Position numbers and translations under genes: made by a program. Below, one piece after another: positions 2,480 through 57,104 of a stretch of 64,000 nt of DNA (positions within the stretch are counted from its first letter, which is position 1; every line of letters starts with the position of its first letter). The DNA comes from Octopus sinensis. Lineage: Eukaryota. The DNA lies in contig NC_043010.1 in the NCBI RefSeq assembly GCF_006345805.1, positions 65,038,001 to 65,102,000 of the forward strand, read 5' to 3'. The notes under the pieces are model-generated. The model was not told the DNA's origin. It saw nothing but the letters and a program-made list of their open reading frames with translations, and ran no database searches.

Positions 2480-3020
2480 GAATAAATCCAAATTTACAGG
2501 GAAAAATCAGATTTAGGATTAAATCCAATTTTATAGTAAAATATTATATAATATTAATTAGAGACAAAACCACTATTTTGCAAAACAAACAAAGAAAGAC
2601 TTAATCAATACATAAAATTTTAATAAAAAGTCAAAATATAACGCTGACTTTTTACAGTAGCGGTAACACATCGTGACGTATATTTGCCATCTCAATATGG
2701 CTACCCCTAAGGGTGGATGCTACTGTAGTTTTTAGCCCCAGGAGGACACACTCCTCCAGCTGGCCATAGACACACTTTCTGTGCCCTGTCAGTATTTGCA
2801 AAGGGAAGTCATCCTTCCCGTCTTCAACTTATGATACACACGGACTCGAGTTTCGAGGTATTGACCTCTCATCAGCGTTATTTATTTTTTACATTCATCT
2901 TAATCTTATTTCGGGCAGAGTTCTTTCGTCACACTCCTGTAACCGCATCAGTGGTCCTTTGCTTTCTTCTTTCTTATTTGTGTGTCTCTCCATACTAACC
3001 GTCAGCCATATTGTATTTCT
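2480..3020 (-). mobile_element. Penelope-type terminal repeat (pLTR)-like non-coding element carrying a hammerhead
   Basis: Contains the minimal hammerhead at 2840-2878. Segment 2681-2815 recurs, rearranged, at 35939-36103. Confidence 0.55.
2840..2878 (-). ncRNA. Minimal Type I hammerhead ribozyme
   Basis: Minus strand reads ACG CUGAUGA GAGGU-CAAU-ACCUC GAA ACUCGAGU C/CGU. Core intact, 5-bp stem II, palindromic stem III, GUC cleavage triplet, only 3-bp stem I. Confidence 0.8.
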
Positions 3021-13572: not shown

Positions 13573-13859
13573 CGTCTGTATGTACGTGTTTGTGTGTGTT
13601 TGTGTGTGTGTGTGAATTTGAGGGAGAGTGCTGTCTAAGTGACACACACTCTCTCTCACACACACACGCATACATAGATAAAAGAAATATGTTTATTATT
13701 TATATATGTACGTATATATGACAATACACCCCTCTCTCTCACTCTCTCTCTCTCTCTCACTCTCACTAACACACATCCTCTATTTCCTCTGTGGTTTGAT
13801 ACTGTATGTATATATATATATATGTGTGTGTGTGTGTGCTTGTGTGTGCGGGCTGGATT

Positions 13860-14742
13860 CTACAATCGTCAGAAAATAGGAGAGGAATTTTCTTTCTTGA
13901 TGCTCTTTGTGACACATAAAAAGATTTGTAACATTACGTCTCCCCAAATTAAGGCAAAACAGAAAAAAAGAATTGCAGTTGATGAACCATTGTCTGGCTT
14001 TGCTGCCACCATTGTTACAGGTGGACGAACAGCTCATTCGGCTTTTAAATTACCAATAAACCTCGTGACAACTGACAGTCTAATTTGTAACGTAAGCAAT
14101 GATTCAGGTTCAGCAGAAGTGTTATGCCCATGCCACCATATCATTTAGGGTGAACGCACCATGTCACATAGAGGTGAAATGGAAGTTCTTGGTAACACCT
14201 TAGAGAACATCAGAGGCAACAATAAATTTATGGGAGAAATACAAATCAGTTATTTCAGTCCTTGATGAAAATCAAGCTGTCCATTACCCAACAGAGTTCC
14301 TTAATTCTCTTGAGCCACCTGGAATTCCTCCACATAAACATTTTCTAAAGGTAGGAGTCCCAATAATGCTTCTAGGAAATTTAGATCCTCCTAAATTATG
14401 CAATGGGACAGGGATGATTGTCAAGACATTGTCACCTAATGTGACAGTAGCTACCCTCATCACTGGATGTGCCTCTGAAGAAGAGGTTTTCGTTCCAAGA
14501 ATTTCAATCAAACCAACAGATATGCCCTTTGAGTTCAAACGAACACAATTCCCACTGCGACTTCTCTTTGCAATGTCTGTTAATAAAGCTCAAGGTTAGT
14601 ATTTGAAATCTACTGGCTTGATTTTCTTATAGTCAAATTCTTATGGTGAAATTTGCTCCAGTGTAGGTCGTTTGCAAGACCTATTTATCTATTCTCCAAA
14701 CCAGAAAACAAAGAATGCTGTTTACCTAGAAGCTCTTACATA
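13860..14742 (+). mobile_element. Helitron PIF1-like helicase remnant (internally deleted)
   Basis: [33 protein letters not shown] and [16 protein letters not shown], with stops and frameshifts. Confidence 0.9.
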
Positions 14743-17649: not shown

Positions 17650-19428
17650 GAGCATTTGTTTCGACTCTTTTGTACCAAGAAGTCCCGCAACATTACACTC
17701 AGTATGTAACAGAGAATGAGTCAAAGCTTTTGAATGAACAACGGACAGCTTACAATTGCATCATTCCAATGACTCAGGGAGGAAAATGGTGGCCTGTTCT
17801 TTTTGGCTGCTCCTGGGGTTACTGGCAAGACGTTTTTGATAAACCTTTTGCTAGCAAATGTCAGTCTAGATGGGTGCATTGCATTGGCGGTAGCATCTTC
17901 AGGAACAGCAGCCACTCTCTTGTCAGTGAGACGAACAGCTCATTCTACTTTCAAGGTGCCCTTAAATTTACTTAGGATAGAGACTCCAATTTGCAACATT
18001 TCTAAGACATCCGCAAAGGCCAAGGTCTTGCAGCAGACGTGCTTGGTTGTCTGGGATTAATGCACCATATCTCACCGTGGAGCACTTGAGGCTGTTGATC
18101 GGAGCCTAAGAGATTTGAGAGGAGAGGACATTGTCATAGGTGGAGGCACTGTAGTTTTGGTTGGAGATTTCAGACAAACCCTCCCTGTGATCCCAAAAGG
18201 TACAAAAGCAGATGAACTACAGGCCTGTCTCTTAACTGTGGAGCCAGATGACTAAACTGCAACTGACAGTTAAGATGAGGGCCCAATTATTTGGTGATCA
18301 AACCGCCGGGTTGTTTTCACACAAGCTTCTGAAGATAGGGAATGGGCAACTACCATATGCCAGCCAAATGCAACAACACCGGCTACCCTGTGGTGAGATG
18401 GTACCAACTATCATTGATCCCATAATGCATGTGCTCCCAAGCATTGCAAACATTTTAGCAACAGTGAATGGATCTGTGAGCGAACCATCCAGGTAATGAT
18501 GTCGACAAAATCAACTGGGATCTCTTGCAGTTGATGCCAAGACAAGAGCAATCTTTCAAATCCCTCGACACTGCATTGATCAAGAACAGGCTGTAGTTTT
18601 TCCAATTGAGGTCTTGAACTCTCTACAGCCATCTGGAATGCCACTTCACCACTTAACAATTAAAAAGGGGGCCCCCAATCATGCTTCTCAGGATTATGGA
18701 GCTACTTAGTCTTTGCAATGGCACCACAGTAGTAGTGAAAGCGATGCGACCCCATGTCCTAGAGTCACCAATTATGACAGAAGTATAAGGGTGAGAATGT
18801 CTTCAATCCGCGGATCCTGTTAATCCCATATGACCTCCCCTTTGAATTTAAACGGTTCCAGTTCCCAGTGAAACAAGTCTTGAGGACAATCTCTCAAGGT
18901 TGTTGGATTTCATGTTGCTTCTCCTTGCATCTCTAATGGGGAATTATATGTAGGATGTTCGCGAGTTGGAAGTACCCAAAATCTTTCCATTTATACTCCA
19001 ATTAATGGACACACTCAAAATATCGTATATTAGAAGCTCTAGATAATTAAATTGTGATTGATTTCTAAATGTTTTCAATACATTTGTTTATACTCAAGTC
19101 ATCTGATAGAATTGTGGCTAAATGTACTTATTAAGAGGATAGGAGCGCCCACAGACCGGTTCTCAAATTTATGCATTTTCAAGTGAAACGTGTTCAAATA
19201 TGTACTGACAATTGAAGGTGATTGCCAAGACAAAGAACTACCTGGTTTCAAAGAATTTTAAAAGTGAGAACATCGGACGAAACATGCTATTTAGATATAC
19301 AGTTGGTAGCTCAGCTAATAACTGTTGAGAACTGCATAATCCATGTTTCATTTTACTAAGAGATTTAAAAGACATACTAAAATTTCATTATTTTCTTTAA
19401 CCCAGACAACGCTGGGTATTTCTGTTAG
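17650..19428 (+). mobile_element. Helitron 3' part: PIF1 helicase pseudogene plus 3' terminus
   Basis: APGVTGKTFLINLLL, TAHSTFKVP, GDFRQTLPV and QNIVY motifs. Terminal hairpin cccagacaacgctggg (19401-19416), then ctgttag|t, a degenerate CTAG-T end at 19428. Confidence 0.9.
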
Positions 19429-19469: not shown

Positions 19470-20831
19470 CGAATAAACATTTCAACTTCCCTTACATCAA
19501 TAATCAGCAAGATGTTCGAAACCATCCTTAAGAAAAGTATGATGCCCCACCTCCTAAACACAGCCTCTATCTCTGATTCCCAACACGGCTTCGTGCCGAA
19601 GAGATCATGCTTGACCAACTTACTAGTAATGCAAGAATTGGTGACGCGCATCCTCGATGATAGTGATGCTGTTGACATCGTTTTATTGGACTTTGCCAAA
19701 GCTTTTGACTCGGTGAACCACCGCCTATTACTTGTCAAGCTTCAAGCATATAGTTTCCATCCGGATATTGTACGATGGGTTGGTGCCTTCCTCTCAGATC
19801 GCTCCTTCCAAGTCCAAGTTAATGGTTCGCGGTCCGACGTTTCCAGTGCGAGCAGTGGCGTGCCTCAAGGTTCAGTGCTTGGGCCCTTGTTGTTCTTAGT
19901 CTTCATAAATTACTTGCCCGACGACCTCACGCAACACACCCTTCTATTTGCCGACGATATCAAACTGGTCGCTCCTCGCGGTAATATAGAGGATCTTCGT
20001 CGATGCCTCCACCAAATTTGGAAGTGGTCTACCGATTGGGACCTGTGTCTGAACGTGTCAAAGGGCTGTCATCTGCCTGTCGGCTCTACTCCTGCAACTC
20101 AACTTGATTTCGAGCCGGGTCGTCTGCTGCTGGAGAGGACCGATCAGGTAAAGGACCTGGGTATCTTGGTGGATTCCTCCTTTTCGCCTTCGGCCCAGTG
20201 CGTCCATGCTGCCAACAAAGCACGCGGAATTCTGTTCTTGATTCGACGGTCATTCGGAATGCTCACAGCAGCCATATTCCTACCACTCTATGTCACGCTG
20301 GTGAGACCAATATTGGAGTATGGGATTCGAGCCTCTTCTCCTTATCTCCTCAGAGACATACAGCATCTCGAAAGAGTCCAGAAGCTGGCTACCCACATGG
20401 TTCATGGTCTCAAAAATTTGTCCTACGAAGAAAGGCTGAGGACGCTCGACCTTTATTCTCTTGAAAAACGCCGCCGCCGTGGTGATCTCATTCTCGCCCA
20501 CAACATCATAAGCGGAAAGTGTAACCTCTCGAAAGAGATGTTCTTCACTCCTGCTCCAGAGCGTCGGCTGCGGGGTCATTCCGAAAAGCTCTACCTGCGA
20601 CGATTTCATCTCAATCGAAGGAGAGGAGCTTTCTCCGTTCGGGTTGCGGATCCGTGGAACTAGCTGCCAGACGAGATGGTGAAGATGCCGACGACCGCTT
20701 TGTTCAAAGCCTCCCTGGACCTCAAGTGGCCTGAACTCTTTACATGAACACCACCCTGTACTTAACTCCATGTCCCCCTACATGGCCTTGCTATTTGCTT
20801 TTGAGCCAAATTAACTAACTAACTAACTAAC
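19470..20831 (+). mobile_element. 5'-truncated CR1/L2-group LINE with a largely intact RT (ORF 19512-20663; original stop at 20745-20747)
   Basis: QHGF, DFAKAFDSV, GVPQGSVLGP, LFADD and YEERL..L.SLE.RR.RGDLI motifs. One premature TAG; (TAAC)n tail. Confidence 0.95.
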
Positions 20832-22084: not shown

Positions 22085-22139
<55 letters not shown>

Positions 22140-22162
<23 letters not shown>

Positions 22163-22464
22163 TACATACATATATGCACACACATGTCCATATACACACA
22201 CACATACACATATGTGTACATATACATACATACATATACACACATATGCATACATAGACATATACATACATACCCATACACATACGTACACATACACACA
22301 TACACCCATATACACATGTACATATGTACCCATATACATGTATCTACGTACACGCCCATACCCATACTCATACATACACTTATATATGTCTACACACATA
22401 TATATATAAATATATAAAGAAGTGGGGATATACACTCCCATACACTCACGCTCACATATCCATA

Positions 22465-22511
<47 letters not shown>

Positions 22512-22580
22512 CATATATATATACACACACACCCATATACACATATATATACATACATACATACACATACATATCCATAC

Positions 22581-22612
<32 letters not shown>

Positions 22613-22649
22613 ATATATGTGTATATGGGTGTGTGTGTATATATATGTG

Positions 22650-22689
<40 letters not shown>

Positions 22690-22987
22690 TATGGATATGT
22701 GAGCGTGAGTGTATGGGAGTGTATATCCCCTCTTATTTATATATTTATATATATGTGTGTGTAGACATATATAAGTGTATGTATGAGTATGGGTATGGGC
22801 GTGTACGTAGATACATGTATATGGGTACATATGTACATGTGTATATGGGTGTATGTGTGTATGTGTATGTATGTGTATGTATGTATATGTCTATGTATGC
22901 ATATATGTGTGTATATGTATGTATGTATATGTACACATATGTGTATGTGTGTGTGTATATGGACATGTGTGTGCATATGTGTATGTA

Positions 22988-23028
<41 letters not shown>

Positions 23029-23055
23029 GTGGGTGTATATATATATATGTATATG
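22140..23055. repeat. ~900-bp imperfect palindrome of complex (TA/CA) microsatellite
   Basis: The non-trivial segment 22320-22470 is the reverse complement of 22690-22850. Centre near 22590. Confidence 0.9.
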
Positions 23056-23327
23056 TATAAGTGAGAGTCTCCTTATTTACCTAAAACTCAATTTTTCTAT
23101 TTATTCTTTTATTCTTTTATTTATTCTTTTATCTACTTTACCACCGATTCCTTGACCACTCCCCTAAGAATGATAGTTTGCGCCATGCCTACCCCCAAAA
23201 AGTCCCCCACCACCACCCTTTTAAACCTGCCTAAATGTATAAATGCCAAACAACTCTTGTCAACTAGCTTCCTGATGATTTCTTTTGAATGAAACAGTTC
23301 TAGTCCTGTAGAAGCTCCTTCTATATA

Positions 23328-23364
<37 letters not shown>

Positions 23365-23505
23365 ATATAGAGGGCATTATACATACATGCCAGAAGGCAT
23401 TATACATACATGCCACACGCTAAGAGGGACAATTAGTCATTTCTACCAAAAATATTACTAATCCCACCGAATGCAATTTTTCAAAGTAAGACATTTAAAA
23501 AAAAT

Positions 23506-23553
23506 AGACCTGTATCACAATGATTTCATACTTACGTATTCATCAGCACGCCT
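23506..23553 (-). ncRNA. Type I hammerhead ribozyme, unit 1 (one G-G mismatch in stem I)
   Basis: AGGCGUG CUGAUGA AUAC-GUAA-GUAU GAA AUCA-UUG-UGAU A/CAGGUCU; predicted cut after 23513. Confidence 0.85.
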
Positions 23554-23983
23554 GAATGTATTATAAATAAACAACGACCCTGCCCCGCTTAAGCCGATCA
23601 GCTAACTGATCAACATCAACGAAGCACATGGGTGAGTTTACATATATTACATCCGGATAAATGGCAAACTTTTACGAATTGCATTTCGGGAGAGGAAAAG
23701 TCTTTTCGGAATAAAAATTTAGCAATTAAGGACAACTACTTAATAAGGAAAACTTAACAAGAAATTGTCAGGTAGATAGCGTGAAAACCTCATAAGAGAA
23801 AAAATTCGAAAATAATTATTTCTTATTGAACATATTAATTTATATATAGAGGGCATTATACATACATGCCGAAGGCATTATACATACATGCCACACGCTA
23901 AGAGGGACAATTTGTCATTTCTCAAAAAAATATACTAATCCCACCGAATGCAATTTTTCAAAGTAAGACATTTAAAAAAATAT

Positions 23984-24031
23984 AGACCTGTATCACAATG
24001 ATTTCATACTTACGTATTCATCAGCAGGCCT
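23984..24031 (-). ncRNA. Type I hammerhead ribozyme, unit 2
   Basis: AGGCCUG CUGAUGA AUAC-GUAA-GUAU GAA AUCA-UUG-UGAU A/CAGGUCU. 7-bp stem I, 4-bp stem II with GNRA loop, 4-bp stem III; cut after 23991. Confidence 0.92.
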
Positions 24032-24461
24032 GAATGTATTATAAATAAACAACGACCCTGCCCCGCTTAAGCCGATCAGCTAACTGATCAACATCAACGA
24101 AGCACATGGGTGAGTTTACATATATTACATCCGGATAAATGGCAAACTTTTACGAATTGCATTTCGGGAGAGGAAAAGTCTTTTCGGAATAAAAATTTAG
24201 CAATTAAGGACAACTACTTAATAAGAAAACTTAACAAGAAATTGTCAGGTAGATAGCGTGAAAACCTCATAAGAGAAAAATTTCGAAAATAATTATTCTT
24301 ATTGAACATATTAATTTATATATAGAGGGCATTATACATACATGCCAGAAGGCATTATACATACATGCCACACGCTAAGAGGGACAATTAGTCATTTCTA
24401 CCAAAAATATTACTAATCCCACCGAATGCAATTTTTCAAAGTAAGACATTTAAAAAAATAT

Positions 24462-24509
24462 AGACCTGTATCACAATGATTTCATACTTACGTATTCATC
24501 AGCAGGCCT
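24462..24509 (-). ncRNA. Type I hammerhead ribozyme, unit 3
   Basis: Identical to unit 2; cut after 24469. Confidence 0.92.
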
Positions 24510-24940
24510 GAATGTATTATAAATAAACAACGACCCTGCCCCGCTTAAGCCGATCAGCTAACTGATCAACATCAGCGAAGCACATGGGTGAGTTTACATA
24601 TATACATCCGGATAAATGGCAAACTTTTACGAATTGCATTTCGGGAGAGGAAAAGTCTTTTCGGAATAAAAATTTAGCAATTAAGGACAACTACTTAATA
24701 AGGAAAACTAACAAGAAATTGTCAGGTAGATAGCGTGAAAACCTCATAAGAGAAAAAATTTCGAAAATAATTATTTCTTATTGAACATATTAATTTATAT
24801 ATAGAGGGCATTATACATACATGCCAGAAGGCATTATACATACATGCCACACGCTAAGAGGGACAATTAGTCATTTCTACCAAAAATATTACTAATCCCA
24901 CCGAATGCAATTTTTCAAAGTAAGACATTTAAAAAAATAT

Positions 24941-24988
24941 AGACCTGTATCACAATGATTTCATACTTACGTATTCATCAGCAGGCCT
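24941..24988 (-). ncRNA. Type I hammerhead ribozyme, unit 4
   Basis: Identical to unit 2; cut after 24948. Confidence 0.92.
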
Positions 24989-25400
24989 GAATGTATTATA
25001 AATAAACAACGACCCTGCCCCGCTTAAGCCGATCAGCTAACTGATCAACATCAGCGTGTGGCATGTATGTATAATGCCTTCTGGCATGTATGTATAATGC
25101 CCTCTATATATAAATTAATATGTTCAATAAGAAATAATTATTTTCGAAATTTTTTCTCTTATGAGGTTTTCACGCTATCTACCTGACAATTTCTTGTTAA
25201 GTTTTCCTTATTAAGTAGTTGTCCTTAATTGCTAAATTTTTATTCCGAAAAGACTTTTCCTCTCCCGAAATGCAATTCGTAAAAGTTTGCCATTTATCCG
25301 GATGTAATATATGTAAACTCACCCATGTGCTTCGTTGATGTTGATCAGTTAGCTGATCGGCTTAAGCGGGGCAGGGTCGTTGTTTATTTATAATACATTC

Positions 25401-25448
25401 AGGCCTGCTGATGAATACGTAAGTATGAAATCATTGTGATACAGGTCT
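25401..25448 (+). ncRNA. Type I hammerhead ribozyme in the inverted unit
   Basis: aggcctg ctgatga atacgtaagtat gaa atcattgtgat a caggtct, read directly on +; cut after 25441. Confidence 0.92.
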
Positions 25449-25738
25449 ATATTTTTTAAATGTCTTACTTTGAAAAATTGCATTCGGTGGGATTAGTAAT
25501 ATTTTTGGTAGAAATGACTAATTGTCCCTCTTAGCGTGTGGCATGTATGTATAGTGCCTTCTGGCATGTATGTATAATGCCCTCTATATATAAATTAATA
25601 TGTTCAATAAGAAATAATTATTTTCGAAATTTTTTCTCTTATGAGGTTTTCACGCTATCTACCTGACAATTTCTTGTTAAGTTTTCCTTATTAAGTAGTT
25701 GTCCTTAATTGCTATATATATATATATATATATATATA

Positions 25739-25766
25739 TCTTTGTATATATAAAACTGAGAATGTG

Positions 25767-26499: not shown

Positions 26500-27560
26500 A
26501 TGTATGTCTGTACGTATATATATAGTAAAAATTTACAAAAAATACAAGACGAAGACAGTTGTGTAAAAAACAAACAGATGTATTAGTTTAACGCTCGGGA
26601 AGTGAGAATATCTTAAACGTTTCGAGCCTACGCTCTTCGGCAGAAAGGAACACAGAAATAAACAGGGAGAGAAAATAACGAATGTTTGGTGGCAAGCATT
26701 CTATCATGGCGAATTCCGGACAGAGGGGGACAAGAGTGGGGTGTAGGTTAGACTGAGTGTGGGGATAGGGTTGGGGTATGTGGGAGGGAGGTGAAAAGGA
26801 TGCAGTGGTAGTGGGATGGGTTGTATAGGGAAGATGAAGTTGGATACTGTAGGGGTGGGTTGACGAGGGAGGTGTGCCGATGAAGTGAGAGGGGAGAGTT
26901 AGAGAGGAGAGTGAGAGGGGGAAGGGAGAGGGGAAAGGAGAGGGATGTGGGAGTGAAGAGAAGTAGGTGTTAGAGCAAGAAAGATGAGGTGGTTGCGAAG
27001 ACGTAGGAGTGAGAGGAAGAGAGGAGAGGGGAGGAGGGTTAGATGAAGAGGGGAGGAGAGTTGAGTCCATGAGGCGCAATGAGCAAAGAGAAAAGATTAA
27101 TTGCTGTTCACGTGGAAGACGGGATTCCGGATGGCCCCTGTGCAAGGACAATCCGAACACAAATTGGTGTTGCAAAGAATGACTGGTAGAACGGAAATGT
27201 CACGAGACCGCGGTATCATTTCCGAGTCGGATATCTCGGAGGTGTTCCGAGAACCAGTCAGCCGAGCGGCGTCCTGTTTGACTGATATACAGAGAAAGAC
27301 AGAAAGAACAGAAGATGCAGTAGATGACGTTGCTAGAAGTGCAGGGGAAGGAGTCGGCGATATGATAGGGTCGGTGATGGGTGCCTGTGAGGAGGGTGGT
27401 GTTGGAGAGGTGAGGGCAAGTGTGGCAGCGTTGGCGGGAGCTGGGGAACGAGCCGGGTTGGGAGGCTGCGTTAGGGAAGAAGCTGTGGACCAAGAGGTCA
27501 CGTAGGGTGTGGGCGCGTTTGAAGGAAGGTTAGGGAAGATGTGATACGCGTGTTGATGCA
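26500..27560 (-). mobile_element. Penelope-like element 3' part: GIY-YIG, polypyrimidine 3'UTR, pLTR with variant hammerhead (26613-26647, CUGCCGA)
   Basis: CTSSNVIYCIFCSFCLSLYISQTGRR..EHLRDIR. Confidence 0.88.
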
Positions 27561-27769
27561 TGCTTTATATATCAATGCATTAGATTCAACTGTTTCTGCT
27601 ATAACACTGTATTAAAACAACGTAATTTTAATACAAAGAAAACATTTCATCATTTAATAACGATTCAGTCATAAAAACACAAACGCCATTCATTAAAATC
27701 CACTATGATCTAAATTCACGCAATGCACTGGCAATTAAAAGTGCTATGGATGGAAAGGAATTTTAATAT

Positions 27770-28525
27770 TATTTACATTTGACGGATATTTGACCTCGTC
27801 TTGTCTGTTGTTAACGCAACGTTTCGGCTGATATATTCCCCAGCCTTCATCAGGTGTCCTGGGTAAATTTCGAACCTGAGTTCTCATTCCTAAGGTATTT
27901 TCCTGAGGTTATTTTATTATTATAATCGAGCTCGGAATCTTGGGGTTAGTAACCTGCGCCCTTTACCACAACGCCATATGACCGTGGACAATTATGGACT
28001 GAATATTAGAGCTTATAAATCTAATATTTTCCTATCCTTCCTTAATACCGGTTCCCATATGTTGGTCATATCTGCACTCAGTCTGCTTAGGAGGTTACTA
28101 TGTCCTACCATATGTGCTGTTTCTTTTAGTTTTCGTATTTTCCAGTGCTGTTTTATGTCTATTATTTTAACTTCGCCCCACAAGCGGAGGTGGTATCCGT
28201 ATTTTTCTATACATGATCAGCTATACCCGATTTGTCAATATCTCCTCGTGTCACAGCTTTGCGATGTTCCTTTAGGTTAAGAGCGCGGGCTACTATCCCC
28301 AAGATTCGAAGTTCGAATCCAGGCAGTGACCGAATAATAATAATAATAATAATAATATAATAATAATAATAATAATAATAATATAATAATAACAACATCG
28401 GTAAAATTCCTTAGGAATGAGAACCCCGAAACGTTGTGTTAACAACAAACAAGATGCGTACAAATATCCATGAAATGTAAATAATGTAAATAATGTACAT
28501 AATTTCTCATCTCTCAAATATAGAT
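27770..28525 (-). mobile_element. Penelope-like element: GIY-YIG C-terminus (27980-28274), 3' pLTR (27770-27975) and inverted 5' pLTR copy (28275-28525)
   Basis: LKEHRKA..SGIADH..EVKIID..HWKIRKLKE..IWEP on minus. The two flanks are mutually inverted and contain a tRNA-like A/B-box segment. Confidence 0.8.
27814..27857 (-). ncRNA. Minimal Type I hammerhead ribozyme in pLTR
   Basis: ACAC CUGAUGA A GGCUG-GGGAAUAUAU-CAGCC GAA AC GUU/GCGU. Intact core, palindromic AACGUU stem III, one stem I mismatch. Confidence 0.75.
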
Positions 28526-28814
28526 GAGAAAAGAATTTTTGTTGGATGGATATTATCTCCTGAGTTCATAGCCACAATATTATTAAATCAATACAAGTTT
28601 CTACCAATCATAGTGTTTGTCTCTTCTGAAGTTCAAAGTAAAATGTAAACAAAACATTATTTCCATACTCAAAGAATCAGTAGTGGAGAGAAAACAGTTC
28701 AAATTTCACCAACTATTATAATGTTCTTTCAATTAACTGTATAATAATTACATACGGCCACACCTTGAAACAGTTCAAATTTCACCAACTATTATAATGT
28801 TCTTTCAATTAACT

Positions 28815-29433
28815 GTATAATAATTATATACGGCCACACCTTGAATACTGCTGCCCACTGTGGTCTCCCCATACAAGACAAAACATCTCCAGAATTGAGT
28901 CTCCCCAGAGGGCACTCACTAAACGAATTGAAGGCATGGCCGCTCTCGATTATTGGGATCGCCTTAAAGCCTTGAAACTTTACTCCTTCCAGCGTCGCCG
29001 TGAGCGGTACATCATTTGTACGATGTGGAGAATATACCACCAACTTTGCCCAAACGACCTTAACATTAGCTTCAAGGTTCATCCAAGACTGGGACCACGG
29101 GCCATACGACCCTTGCCCAGTTCAAGATCACAACATACATGTACACTGCAACACAATTTCTTTTCCTCAACAGGCCCTGCCCTATTTAACATTGTCCCGA
29201 AGGAGATCAAAGAGGAAAAGGATCCCATCAAGTTTAAACGGAGTCTGGATAGATTCCTTCAAAGAATAAGCCACCCATAATTGGATTCAACTCACCCAAC
29301 AAGAACTCACTACTTGAGAAAAACTTGCCTTAAACAGGATTCGCATAATCCTATCAGGTGGTGCTATTAAGTTAGACATGGCCTGGACCAATCTTTGGTC
29401 GAAACATATCTATGTTTATCTAAGTCTAAGTTT
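28815..29433 (+). mobile_element. CR1/L2-group LINE 3' fragment
   Basis: IRPHLEYCCPLWSP and YWDRLKALKLYSFQRRRERYII..LFNIVPKEIK..FKRSLDRFL; short ctaagt tail. Confidence 0.88.
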
Positions 29434-51536: not shown

Positions 51537-52332
51537 ATAAGGTGATCAATAAGTATCCGGGCTCTTGCCATAGTAACGAAGCTAATACACACAGTAAAGT
51601 CGCCTGGCAAAAATTAACCGTGAACTCTGCTGTGCAGTAATTTTAACTTTCTAGCTTACTTTCGCTGTTTTCTGCAATACTTGATAGGAAGGTGTGTAGC
51701 GTGTTATAGTCGCATTGACCATGACAGAGGAAGTTGTCATGGTGACACCTGCTCAGAGACCTACACAAAATTGCAGAAAGTATATGGCGAAGAGTGTATG
51801 AGCCGCACGCATATGTACAAGTGTTTCAGACGTTTCCAAGATTGCCGGTATTGACGAACATTCCAGGAAAGTTGCAACCAGAGGAAAACATCGCAGATGT
51901 GCGTGCAGCTCTGAGGGGAAATCGTCGAATAAATATCCGTGAATTATCAGAGGATGTGCAGATTAGTTCCGGTTCAGTTCAGTCCATTATCACTAGCGAT
52001 TTGGGTATGAGACGCGTATCTACCAAGTTTGTGCCAAAACTGCTTTCAGATGACCAAGAAGATACACAGGTTTCAGTTGCACAAGATTTCCTTGATTGTG
52101 TCGAGAACGATGAAAATGTTTTGAAAACTTTGCGTAACCCTCTTAGCAGGTATCGCTAAGCTTTTCACAAACTTTAGCCCAGATTCTCTGCTCAATTTTC
52201 TCCTTCCAAGCACTGCTGCAAAGAAGGGAAGTGAGCTACAATATTAAATCTTAGAGCGCATGCGCAGCGGCTTCACTCTGCGTGCTTTAGCTTCGTCACT
52301 ATGACAACAGTCCGGATACTCATTGATCATAC

Positions 52333-52529: not shown

Positions 52530-53657
52530 TATGAAAATAAACAAAAGACGAAGGCAGGTGGAAAACAAACGAACAATTGTATTAGTATGGCGCTCAGGAA
52601 ATATAAATAAAACAAGTCTTTAACGTTTCGAGCCTACGCTCTTCAACAGAAAGATACACAGAGAGAGAAAAACACAGAAAGAAGGAGAGAAACAAAATGC
52701 GTGCAGTAGCTAACGAATCAACATGGCGATCTGATTTCGGCCAGAGGTCAAAGATCAAACATGAGACGCGAGAGCGAAATAAGGGGAGATAATAGGGTTG
52801 ATAAAAGGGTTGAGGGACCAGCTAAATGTGCGTGGGAGGGGTCTGGATGTGTGTATGTATAGGGTTGGTGTATGTATTAGTATGTATAAGGGTGTGTGTG
52901 TGTGTGTGTGTGTATGAGAGAGTATTAGTGCGTAGGATTGGTCTGGACGTGCGTATGTATGGGGTTGGTGTATGTATTAGTATGTATTAGTATGTATTAG
53001 TACGTATTGGTATGTATAGGTGTGTGTGTGTGTGTGTGTGAGAGTATAAGTGCGTATGCGGGGTCTGGACGTGTGTATGTATAGGGTTGGTGTAAGTATT
53101 AGTATGTACTAGTATGTATTAGTACGTATTAGTATGTATTAGTTGGTGTGTGTATTAGTATGGCACATCATATGTGATGTGATGTGTAAAGTCATGTGGT
53201 GTAGTGAGGAGAAGAGGGGGAGGGGGAGAAGAGGGGGGAGGGGAAGAGGAGGGGGAGGAGAAAGGGGGATGAGGAGAGGATGGGGAGAAGGAAAGGGAGG
53301 AGGGGGATGAAGGAGGAAAGAGGGAGAGGGGGAGAGAGAAGGGGAGAGAGGGAGTGAGGGAGCAGAGGGAAGGGGAAGAGGGAGGGAGAAAGAGGGAAGA
53401 AGGGAAGGGGAGTAGGGGTGAAAGGATGAAGGACTGAAGAAGTAGGGGTCGGGGGGAGAAAGGATAGGTGAGGAGGGGGGAGAGTGGGGTTAGATGAGGA
53501 GGGGGGGAGAGTTGAGACCAAATGGCGTATAAGAGCGAAGAGAGAAGATTAATTCCTGTTCACGGCGCAAACGGGAATCCGGATGGCCTCTGTGTAAGGA
53601 CAAACCGAACACAGATAGGTGTTGCAAGGAGTGACCGGTGGAGCGGAAATGACCGGT
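52530..53657 (-). mobile_element. Penelope-like 3' end, same family as 26500-27560; pLTR hammerhead has CUGUUGA (52619-52652)
   Basis: 53520-53657 matches 27070-27210; polypyrimidine UTR; acgtttcgagcctacgctcttc motif. Confidence 0.85.
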
Positions 53658-54019: not shown

Positions 54020-54810
54020 AGCCATAAAGGAAGCCTGTAACAAATAAACAACTTTATTCAGGAAAATTCTACATCCGAGAGATCCCAAATGCAACCACAG
54101 ACACAGACCCTATTGACGTCCTCCTAAAACTTATTCTCCAACAATTACCGAGTTTTATAAGGAATGATCTGGACCTTTTAAACCATCTCCCGAACAAAAC
54201 CAGCAAAAACTCCCTTCTGGTTTCATTCGATGTAATAAACTTCTACACTTAGATCCCTTACGAAAGCGAAATACAAGCCAAAAAGTTCTGGCTGAAAAAA
54301 TTCCTAGAATACCTTCCTGACTGAATCGGAAAAGAATTCATCATTGAAGGAATAAAATTCATCCCACAGAACAACTTCTTCAACTTCAACGAGAAGATCC
54401 ATAGACACAACATGGGCACGGCGATGAAAACGATAGTAAACCCTACTTTTGCTAACTTTGTCATGGCATATTTGGAAGTCGAAATATAGGAGCACGCTAG
54501 GCTGAAATTTGGAGACAACTTCCAAAAATACTTACTAACCAACTGAAAATACTACCTGGGTGATTGTTTCATTCTGTGATCATATAACTTTTAGCAACTC
54601 TTAGAATTTAACAACTGAATCACAATATCCAATTTACAATGGGATACAGCCACAAACAATTACACCTCCTGCACATCTTGATCATAAGAACAGATACTGA
54701 AATTGAGATCAACATCTTCTTCAAACAAACGGACTCAAAATAATATCTTCTATTCTCATCCTGCTACCTAAAGCATACTAAAATAAATATACTGTTCAAC
54801 TTAGTAAATT
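54020..54810 (+). mobile_element. Penelope-like RT remnant
   Basis: LVSFDVINFYT, NNFFNFN..GTAM..PTFANFVMAYLE. Confidence 0.8.
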
Positions 54811-57004: not shown

Positions 57005-57104
57005 NNNNNNNNNNNNNNNNNNNNNNNNNNNNNNNNNNNNNNNNNNNNNNNNNNNNNNNNNNNNNNNNNNNNNNNNNNNNNNNNNNNNNNNNNNNNNNNN
57101 NNNN
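57005..57104. other. Assembly gap (100 N)
   Basis: Direct reading. Confidence 1.

Follow-up and report, generated by a model that had tools for sequence, protein, structure and literature searches.

Is the short array of ribozyme-bearing repeats at 23352-25714 in a 64,000-nt stretch of the Octopus sinensis genome the imprint of a mobile RNA element, and if so, which machinery might have inserted it? This stretch (RefSeq assembly GCF_006345805.1, contig NC_043010.1, positions 65,038,001 to 65,102,000 of the forward strand) is referred to below as the window, and all coordinates are counted from its first letter. With a probability that we put at roughly three in four, the array represents a retroelement copy in the genome, non-autonomous and non-coding, of the type known as metazoan non-LTR retrozymes (LTR, long terminal repeat). 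The element looks like a new family within this known class of animal retrozymes, described since 2020 in molluscs among other animals (Cervera & de la Pena 2020, PMC7229834), and not like a new kind of system.

Array layout and hammerhead copies

Tandem Repeats Finder places a 478-nt tandem period at 23352-25053, with 3.6 copies and 97% matches. Taken together with BLAST and alignment, the repeat searches resolve the locus into two arms of opposite orientation, in which five hammerhead copies are located:

23352-25056, minus strand: sense arm, 3.56 units of 478/479 nt, the ribozyme-sense strand being the minus strand (Tandem Repeats Finder, BLAST, alignment)
25053-25714, plus strand: inverted arm, 1.37 units, the sense strand being the plus strand (repeat finder, BLAST, alignment)
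23506-23553, minus strand: hammerhead copy 1, predicted cut between 23513 and 23512, C-to-G mismatch in stem I (AGGCGUG)
23984-24031, minus strand: hammerhead copy 2, intact, predicted cut between 23991 and 23990
24462-24509, minus strand: hammerhead copy 3, intact, predicted cut between 24469 and 24468
24941-24988, minus strand: hammerhead copy 4, intact, predicted cut between 24948 and 24947
25401-25448, plus strand: hammerhead copy 5, intact, predicted cut after 25441

Followed in the ribozyme sense, the sense arm starts at unit position 371 (25056), passes through three full monomers and stops at position ~156-161 (23352-23357). The inverted arm runs from unit position 93 (25053) to 479, continues across the cleavage site to position 1 and ends at 273 (25714). 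A repeat search finds the stretches 23357-23806 and 25148-25597 of the two arms to be 99% complementary. Identity among the units amounts to 97.7-100% when the unit is compared with the window by BLAST, and the differences consist of single-base indels in A/T homopolymer runs together with a few substitutions. The whole array spans ~2.4 kb without coding capacity, and its unit has a G+C (GC) content of 33%. The longest stop-to-stop frame in the unit covers 61 aa, and no homologue of any frame was found. Twelve unit peptides, concatenated, gave no match at E<=10 against 5.8 billion proteins, and an exact look-up of open reading frames (ORFs) for two unit-encoded peptides returned no record. No tRNA or tRNA-like sequence was found in the unit, and an origin from a tRNA or a SINE-like element was ruled out on this negative search.

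The 34-nt string CTGATGAATACGTAAGTATGAAATCATTGTGATA is present exactly five times, four times on the minus strand and once on the plus strand (25408-25441). The catalytic core is complete and identical in the five copies, comprising C3-A9 (CUGAUGA), G12-A14 (GAA), the A15.1-U16.1 pair and an A as H17. Stems I, II and III can be drawn with 7, 4 and 4 bp, respectively; stem I, formed by the flanks AGGCCTG and CAGGTCT, includes one G-U pair, and helix II is capped by a GUAA loop of the GNRA type. Four copies, three of them consecutive, hold a complete type I hammerhead, and the remaining one departs by its single stem I mismatch, with which the minimum free energy (MFE) of the hammerhead changes from -12.1 to -8.1 kcal/mol. 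The predicted minus-strand cuts at 23513, 23991, 24469 and 24948 would yield monomers of 478, 478 and 479 nt.

Most of what the first-pass annotation had read from this DNA is borne out by these results. Its tandem units of ~478 nt with an inverted unit are recovered by Tandem Repeats Finder, repeat search and BLAST, the absence of an ORF agrees with the frames described above, and its description of units that differ mostly by single-base indels fits the variant table. The five type I cores, with their cuts and monomer lengths, are confirmed by an exact string count, and the single stem I mismatch noted in unit 1 reads AGGCGTG. The labels "forward" and "inverted" are right as to the positions of the units and need correction as to strand, as the ribozyme is actually on the minus strand in the four "forward" units and on the plus strand in the "inverted" one.

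The frequency at which such a motif arises by chance was gauged with a type I descriptor (helix I, CUGANGA, helix II, GAA, helix III with A as its first and U as its last base, H17, helix I) applied to both strands of 500 dinucleotide-preserving shuffles of the 64-kb window. With relaxed stems (I>=4, II>=3, III>=2), a shuffled window contains 0.032 matches, which scales to about 2e-4 for one 478-nt unit; with medium stems (I>=5, II>=3, III>=3), the value drops to 0.008. At stem lengths of 7, 4 and 4, matches occur in 0 of 500 shuffles. The unshuffled window holds four descriptor matches, every one inside the array. The hammerhead motif is a non-chance match.

Folding of the monomer

The linear sense monomer reaches an MFE of -141 kcal/mol, compared with -96.6+-5.7 kcal/mol for its shuffles (z = -7.8), and the antisense monomer reaches -104.2 kcal/mol (z = -4.8). 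Folded as circles, the two strands attain -134.2 and -100.6 kcal/mol, respectively, with 65.5% of the bases of the sense circle being paired. A DNA palindrome favors both strands equally. Here, the strands differ by 37 kcal/mol, and this asymmetry is carried by G-U pairs, of which the circular fold contains 20 in the sense and 6 in the antisense orientation; in the folding model it therefore points to RNA structure on the ribozyme-sense strand. In the predicted monomer fold, the 7 continuous base pairs of helix I close the whole molecule and lead into a multibranch loop. On the opposite polarity, no ribozyme was detected by the descriptor or by Rfam, the latter giving none for either strand.

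Variation within the array is concentrated in one place. Most substitutions and indels are private to unit 23513-23990, which has accumulated seven changes, none of them in the core, and whose predicted fold is weaker by 10 kcal/mol. Private changes accompanied by a weaker fold are the pattern expected of uncompensated decay.

Locally, helix III is the least stable part of the ribozyme. As a hairpin with a 3-nt UUG loop it costs +0.8 kcal/mol and is paired with a probability of about 0.02; the canonical fold with three stems, at -9.7 kcal/mol, lies 2.4 kcal/mol above the local hammerhead MFE of -12.1 kcal/mol. The 11 nt of helix III, AUCAUUGUGAU, are quasi-palindromic, and two molecules can pair through them in a duplex of -7.0 kcal/mol. 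With an unstable hairpin and a quasi-palindromic duplex, helix III therefore resembles that of classical animal hammerheads, which is weak and prone to dimerize. By these energies, the motif looks suited at least equally well to double-hammerhead action between neighboring units, as in newt and viroid multimers. The first-pass annotation had contrasted a full stem III with the minimal hammerheads of Penelope elements; the four pairs can indeed be drawn, but at +0.8 kcal/mol they do not make a stable stem, and the contrast was overstated.

The units also contain a 23-nt direct duplication, GGCAUGUAUGUAUAAUGCC(U/C)UC twice, at 23369-23415, 24324-24370, 24803-24849, 25059-25105 and 25539-25585. 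Each duplicate on its own gives a 5-bp hairpin, and in the monomer fold both pair into one long arm.

Insertion architecture and Penelope-like neighbors

The boundaries of the array and the point at which its arms meet offer a view of how it may have been inserted:

23322-23356, no strand: (TA)n microsatellite at the left end of the array, on the target-site side (Tandem Repeats Finder row 23322-23369, period 2)
25713-25752, no strand: (TA)n microsatellite at the right end of the array (Tandem Repeats Finder row 25713-25752)
25053-25056, no strand: head-to-head junction of the arms with the 4-nt microhomology AGCG (sequence reading, BLAST overlap)

The junction's AGCG belongs both to the sense arm, at unit position ~371, and to the inverted arm, at position ~93. 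At this point the sense 5' ends of the arms meet; the sense 3' ends face away from it and border on (TA)n, the left array end falling within the unit's own UAUAUAUAAAUUA stretch. When the flanks are joined, they give back one (TA)n microsatellite, and no target-site duplication is discernible at the array ends. The arms stop at unlike 3' ends and each of them exceeds one unit, as expected of a template without a fixed 3' end, such as a circle or a multimer. The junction is asymmetric, with position 371 joined to 93, and is therefore no simple mirror fold-back; a duplication of that kind was ruled out. The inverted arm has private variants at positions 10-11 and 114.

Insertions of Penelope-like elements (PLEs) are known to comprise partial tandems and an inverted, 5'-truncated copy on the 5' side, with a bias toward microsatellite targets, and (TA)n is the reported preferred target of the Naiad clade, often masking any duplication (PMC8557442). 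Judged by analogy, the topology of the locus matches that reported for PLEs, and its insertion architecture points to Penelope-type mobilization.

Remnants of such elements, and hammerhead-like motifs outside the array, are present in the same window:

27074-27565, minus strand: 5'-truncated PLE remnant outside the array, C-terminal GIY-YIG endonuclease only (phmmer, tblastn)
53511-53651, minus strand, and 54112-54477, plus strand: second PLE remnant, C-terminal part of the endonuclease and reverse transcriptase (RT), respectively (tblastn)
2851-2875, minus strand: hammerhead-like motif, CUGAUGA-GAGGU-CAAU-ACCUC-GAA-ACUCGAGU-C, with G10.1-C11.1
27822-27853, minus strand: hammerhead-like core with a bulged A before G10.1, typical of Penelope, and a UUG loop after GAA

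The minus-strand ORF at 27200-27493 lies 1.4 kb from the array, and exhaustive phmmer searching gave 1537 homologues for it; those of full length (816-891 aa) combine RVT_1 with a C-terminal GIY-YIG domain in the canonical Penelope-like architecture. When these homologues are compared with the window by tblastn, only their last ~165 residues align at 27074-27565, with 34-40% identity. Pfam and a word-indexed protein search missed this endonuclease ORF, which was found by exhaustive phmmer alone. The element at 27074-27565 is a candidate relative of the mobilizing machinery. The pieces of the second remnant lie in opposite orientations ~0.5 kb apart, at ~28 kb from the array.

The mention of Penelope hammerheads nearby in the first-pass annotation was roughly right, the motifs being those at 2851-2875 and 27822-27853. 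The former has a perfectly palindromic helix III, ACUCGAGU, of the dimer type and a helix I of only about 3 bp; Rfam makes no call there, and a degenerate partner is seen ~60 nt upstream (~2925-2954). The latter lacks a drawable helix I and, judged from its sequence, is probably a decayed core; it lies ~260 nt upstream of the truncated endonuclease.

These features can be accommodated in a life cycle modeled on Cervera & de la Pena 2020. The array would be transcribed as a multimer from the ribozyme-sense strand, and the type I hammerheads would cut after ...GUGAUA, either singly or, more likely, as a double hammerhead across neighboring units, the latter being favored because helix III is weak and quasi-palindromic. 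A host RNA ligase would then close the monomers into a highly base-paired circle. RT and endonuclease acting in trans, most likely from a PLE, would copy the circle or multimer into a nicked (TA)n, running around it more than once. The locus would accordingly record one insertion event, in which each side of the (TA)n break primed one cDNA arm and the two arms were joined 5'-to-5' at the 4-nt microhomology. We infer, from the sequence features, that the array is transcribed, that its RNA is cleaved and circularized, that a PLE mobilizes the element, and that there are other copies.

The window as a whole is animal DNA rich in transposons. An ORF of 383 aa at 19512-20663 on the plus strand contains RVT_1, and its closest relatives are CR1/L2-like RTs of long interspersed nuclear elements (LINEs) from birds and turtles, with only 43-50% identity; it is a CR1/L2-like LINE and not a PLE, and an exact look-up of its product returned no record. 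The ORF at 28936-29280 resembles a LINE C-terminus. On the plus strand, a PIF1-like helicase fragment at 13822-14148 (Pfam E 8.6e-8) and an ORF similar to it by eye at 17670-17975 suggest a decayed Helitron-like element, as far as their sequences allow. Another plus-strand ORF, at 51794-52159, has weak helix-turn-helix matches and by eye resembles the N-terminus of a mariner-type transposase. At 22085-23063 lies ~1 kb of compound (TA)/(CA)/(TG) microsatellite that contains long imperfect palindromes; this and similar tracts produce many false miRNA matches in the E-value mode of Rfam. A 76-nt unit at 28692-28845, unrelated to the 478-nt unit, is repeated exactly twice with 98% identity. A run of 100 N at 57005-57104 represents a scaffold gap.

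Weighing the retrozyme reading

Metazoan retrozymes provide the closest frame of comparison. Their repeats measure 350-390 nt in Mytilus galloprovincialis, 220-240 nt in Acropora millepora and 330/350 nt in axolotl; these non-coding, GC-poor sequences give rise to circular RNAs with extensive self-pairing, and besides the reports from a coral, a mussel and the axolotl, there are similar repeats in many invertebrate phyla (PMC7229834). A recent survey defines retrozymes operationally by a Tandem Repeats Finder array with a hammerhead in at least 2 consecutive units and an MFE < -5 kcal/mol, and reports family consensus lengths of 51-972 bp, with 75% of the families having no more than 7 units (preprint 10.64898/2026.07.22.740005). 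The limits that we applied were a unit of about 150-450 bp, against the 51-972 bp of this 2026 survey, and a GC content <45-50%. As far as sequence can tell, the locus agrees with every sequence-level criterion of that preprint. The array shares with metazoan retrozymes a low GC content, the lack of coding capacity, and the absence of LTRs, any primer-binding site (PBS) and any polypurine tract (PPT). It further shares with them a monomer circle predicted to be highly self-paired, a sequence that appears to be species-specific and co-occurring PLEs, the last being found here within the 64-kb window. Invertebrate retrozyme circles measure 170-400 nt, in contrast to the monomer of 478 nt, which falls within the 51-972 bp range of vertebrate families. 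Unlike those of metazoan retrozymes, the hammerhead of the array has A10.1-U11.1, a GUAA loop 2 and a 4-pair helix III with a UUG loop. The likeness to the metazoan families is one of architecture. In the literature searched, no description of a cephalopod element of such kind was found.

Several results weigh against assigning the array to the retrozymes. The evidence comes from one locus, without dispersed copies or covariation: BLAST found no second locus of the unit in the window, and it detected no sequence similarity between the 478-nt unit and the PLE remnants or hammerhead-like motifs described above. Helix III is missing from both the MFE structure and the ensemble, because the core UGAU competes for AUCA. 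The 10.1-11.1 pair is A-U instead of the canonical G-C, and no loop 1/loop 2 tertiary contact is recognizable in the unit's hammerhead. Rfam 15 calls no hammerhead in the window at the gathering threshold, and at E<=10 it returns no hammerhead on 3 kb or on an 86-nt slice, only microsatellite-driven miRNA/snoRNA noise. Finally, a variant at position 373 is common to two adjacent units, implying that the arms did not come from one homogeneous circle, unless the units were homogenized later. In addition to the unit searches in the window, contigs from metagenomes, viruses and prokaryotic genomes gave 0 matches to a loop-degenerate hammerhead pattern, and a second unit-specific 27-mer gave 0 matches in metagenomes.

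In canonical hammerheads, G10.1-C11.1 is highly conserved, and the animal type I form combines a 6-bp helix I and a 4-bp helix II, whose loop contacts are conserved, with a helix III that measures 1-2 bp and bears a palindromic loop (PMC4209133). Compensated changes at 10.1/11.1 occur naturally in Dolichopoda (PMC2837043), and mussel retrozyme hammerheads lack the archetypal loop contacts, yet cleave at about 0.1 per min (PMC7229834); the hammerhead of the array, without recognizable archetypal loop 1/loop 2 nucleotides, is like the mussel family in this respect. The curated hammerhead models that the first-pass annotation had suggested as a check stayed silent, with Rfam 15, at the gathering threshold as well as at E<=10, and among the 150 of 296 matches listed for the whole window in E-value mode, mostly microsatellite false positives, there is no hammerhead. 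This silence is plausibly explained by the departures from the canonical type I hammerhead, namely A10.1-U11.1, a loop 2 of the GNRA type and a helix III of greater length. Recognition by Rfam serves detection and does not define the retrozyme family. Of the retrozyme-type interpretation put forward in the first-pass annotation, the tandem repeat, the type I core, the fold, the lack of coding and the nearby PLEs stand, and the stem III contrast does not; a recently mobile family, of which the window holds one locus and the other collections searched gave no copy, is conjectural.

That the motif might be inactive, a chance match or decayed relic within an ordinary satellite that has no present RNA life cycle, would agree with the silence of Rfam, with the atypical A-U at 10.1-11.1 and a helix III that is marginal as a hairpin, and with the expectation, by extrapolation, that a multi-gigabase genome holds some chance descriptor matches. 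The low chance per 478-nt unit (about 2e-4 even with the relaxed descriptor) and the 0 of 500 shuffles that reach the observed stems speak against it, as do the position of stem I, which closes the whole-monomer fold, and a sense RNA that is 37 kcal/mol more stable than the antisense, with many G-U pairs. The core has moreover remained identical in five copies while unit 23513-23990 gained seven changes elsewhere, so we regard a mere satellite as very improbable. Had an exogenous circular RNA replicon, viroid-like or deltavirus-like, been integrated as cDNA, it would likewise be small, highly structured and hammerhead-bearing, as the monomer is, and circular RNA agents with hammerheads exist in metazoan transcriptomes (PMC7936874). 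The ribozyme of the array, however, is confined to one polarity, no ORF, including one of the delta-antigen type, is present, the low GC and the tandem genomic organization are typical of retrozymes, and the searches of viral contigs gave no match, leaving this origin with hardly any probability.

More closely related to the retrozyme reading is the view that the array is no independent non-autonomous family but a tandem or inverted remnant of the pseudo-LTR, a terminal non-coding region, of an autonomous PLE that has lost its coding part or has it at another place. Type I hammerheads are found in PLE pseudo-LTRs, which occur as partial tandems and as inverted, 5'-truncated copies in microsatellites (PMC8557442; PMC4209133), Xenopus retrozyme families are sister to PLE pseudo-LTRs (preprint 10.64898/2026.07.22.740005), and PLE remnants lie in this very window. 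Yet (TA)n bounds the array on both sides and no RT or endonuclease coding is found inside or adjoining it; in particular, no single ORF with RT and GIY-YIG between pseudo-LTRs was found within or adjoining 23352-25714. The unit is also dissimilar to the PLE remnants of the window, and at least 3.5 short, highly self-paired units in head-to-tail order fit a retrozyme better. We consider a pseudo-LTR remnant distinctly unlikely, noting that, should retrozymes have arisen from pseudo-LTRs, the two readings differ partly in name. A separate doubt concerns the inverted arm at 25053-25714, which could be an assembly artefact, from a chimeric or fold-back read, or the product of a later DNA-level rearrangement such as a microhomology-mediated template switch during replication, and would then carry no signature of how the element was inserted. 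The 100-N gap indicates that the window comes from a scaffolded assembly, which bears on the trust that can be placed in this arm, inverted repeats are known to trouble assemblies (PMC8557442), and replication-based template switching also yields a junction with 4-nt microhomology. An artefact would be harder to reconcile with the asymmetry of the junction (371 to 93), with the private variants of the arm at 10-11 and 114, with an outer end that again stops in (TA)n, and with a topology equal to that of reported PLE insertions; overall, we think either origin of the arm unlikely.

Judged by sequence, the array can be likened to newt satellite 2, Schistosoma Sm-alpha and Dolichopoda pDo500, which are tandem satellite-like repeats with self-cleaving multimers, and a weak helix III favoring double-hammerhead cleavage is common to both. 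The hammerheads of these satellites have a helix III of 1-2 bp, palindromic loops and conserved loop-loop contacts and are recognized by the Rfam model Hammerhead_1, whereas that of the array is not. With the hammerheads of PLE pseudo-LTRs it has in common the type I topology, partial tandems, an inverted 5'-truncated copy and a bias to (TA)n or microsatellites. PLE hammerheads are minimal, in that helix III is missing, helix I is short, helix II is long at 6-8 bp and a base bulges before 10.1 (PMC4209133; PMC8557442); the array differs by its 7-bp helix I, 4-bp helix II, lack of a bulge and lack of an attached RT/endonuclease ORF. Processing of multimers by hammerheads into small structured circular RNAs would be shared with plant LTR retrozymes and viroid-like satellite RNAs. 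Plant LTR retrozymes combine type III hammerheads, LTRs, PBS, PPT, 4-bp target-site duplications and a GC content above 55%, none of which is found in the array, and an LTR retrozyme was rejected, with type III hammerhead, LTR and PBS all absent. Viroid-like RNAs have ribozymes in both polarities, in contrast to the single polarity observed here.

A more specific proposal, which we advance tentatively and at odds clearly short of even, is that the locus represents an undescribed retrozyme family with a non-canonical hammerhead (A10.1-U11.1, GNRA loop 2, a 4-bp quasi-palindromic helix III, invisible to Rfam) and a nearly undecayed record of insertion at a (TA)n break. If this holds, the locus would provide direct structural evidence that Penelope-type target-primed reverse transcription mobilizes retrozymes, a role of the Penelope machinery hitherto inferred only from co-occurrence and pseudo-LTR similarity. 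The PLE-like topology, with its (TA)n target, inverted 5'-truncated arm, microhomology and variable 3' ends, bears on the question of which machinery mobilizes retrozymes. For genome-wide ribozyme censuses, it is relevant that a hammerhead of functional appearance can be caught by a simple descriptor and still escape the curated covariance models. If active, the element would add a new lineage of animal retrozymes, a variant hammerhead architecture and a natural 478-nt scaffold for ribozyme-made circular RNA.

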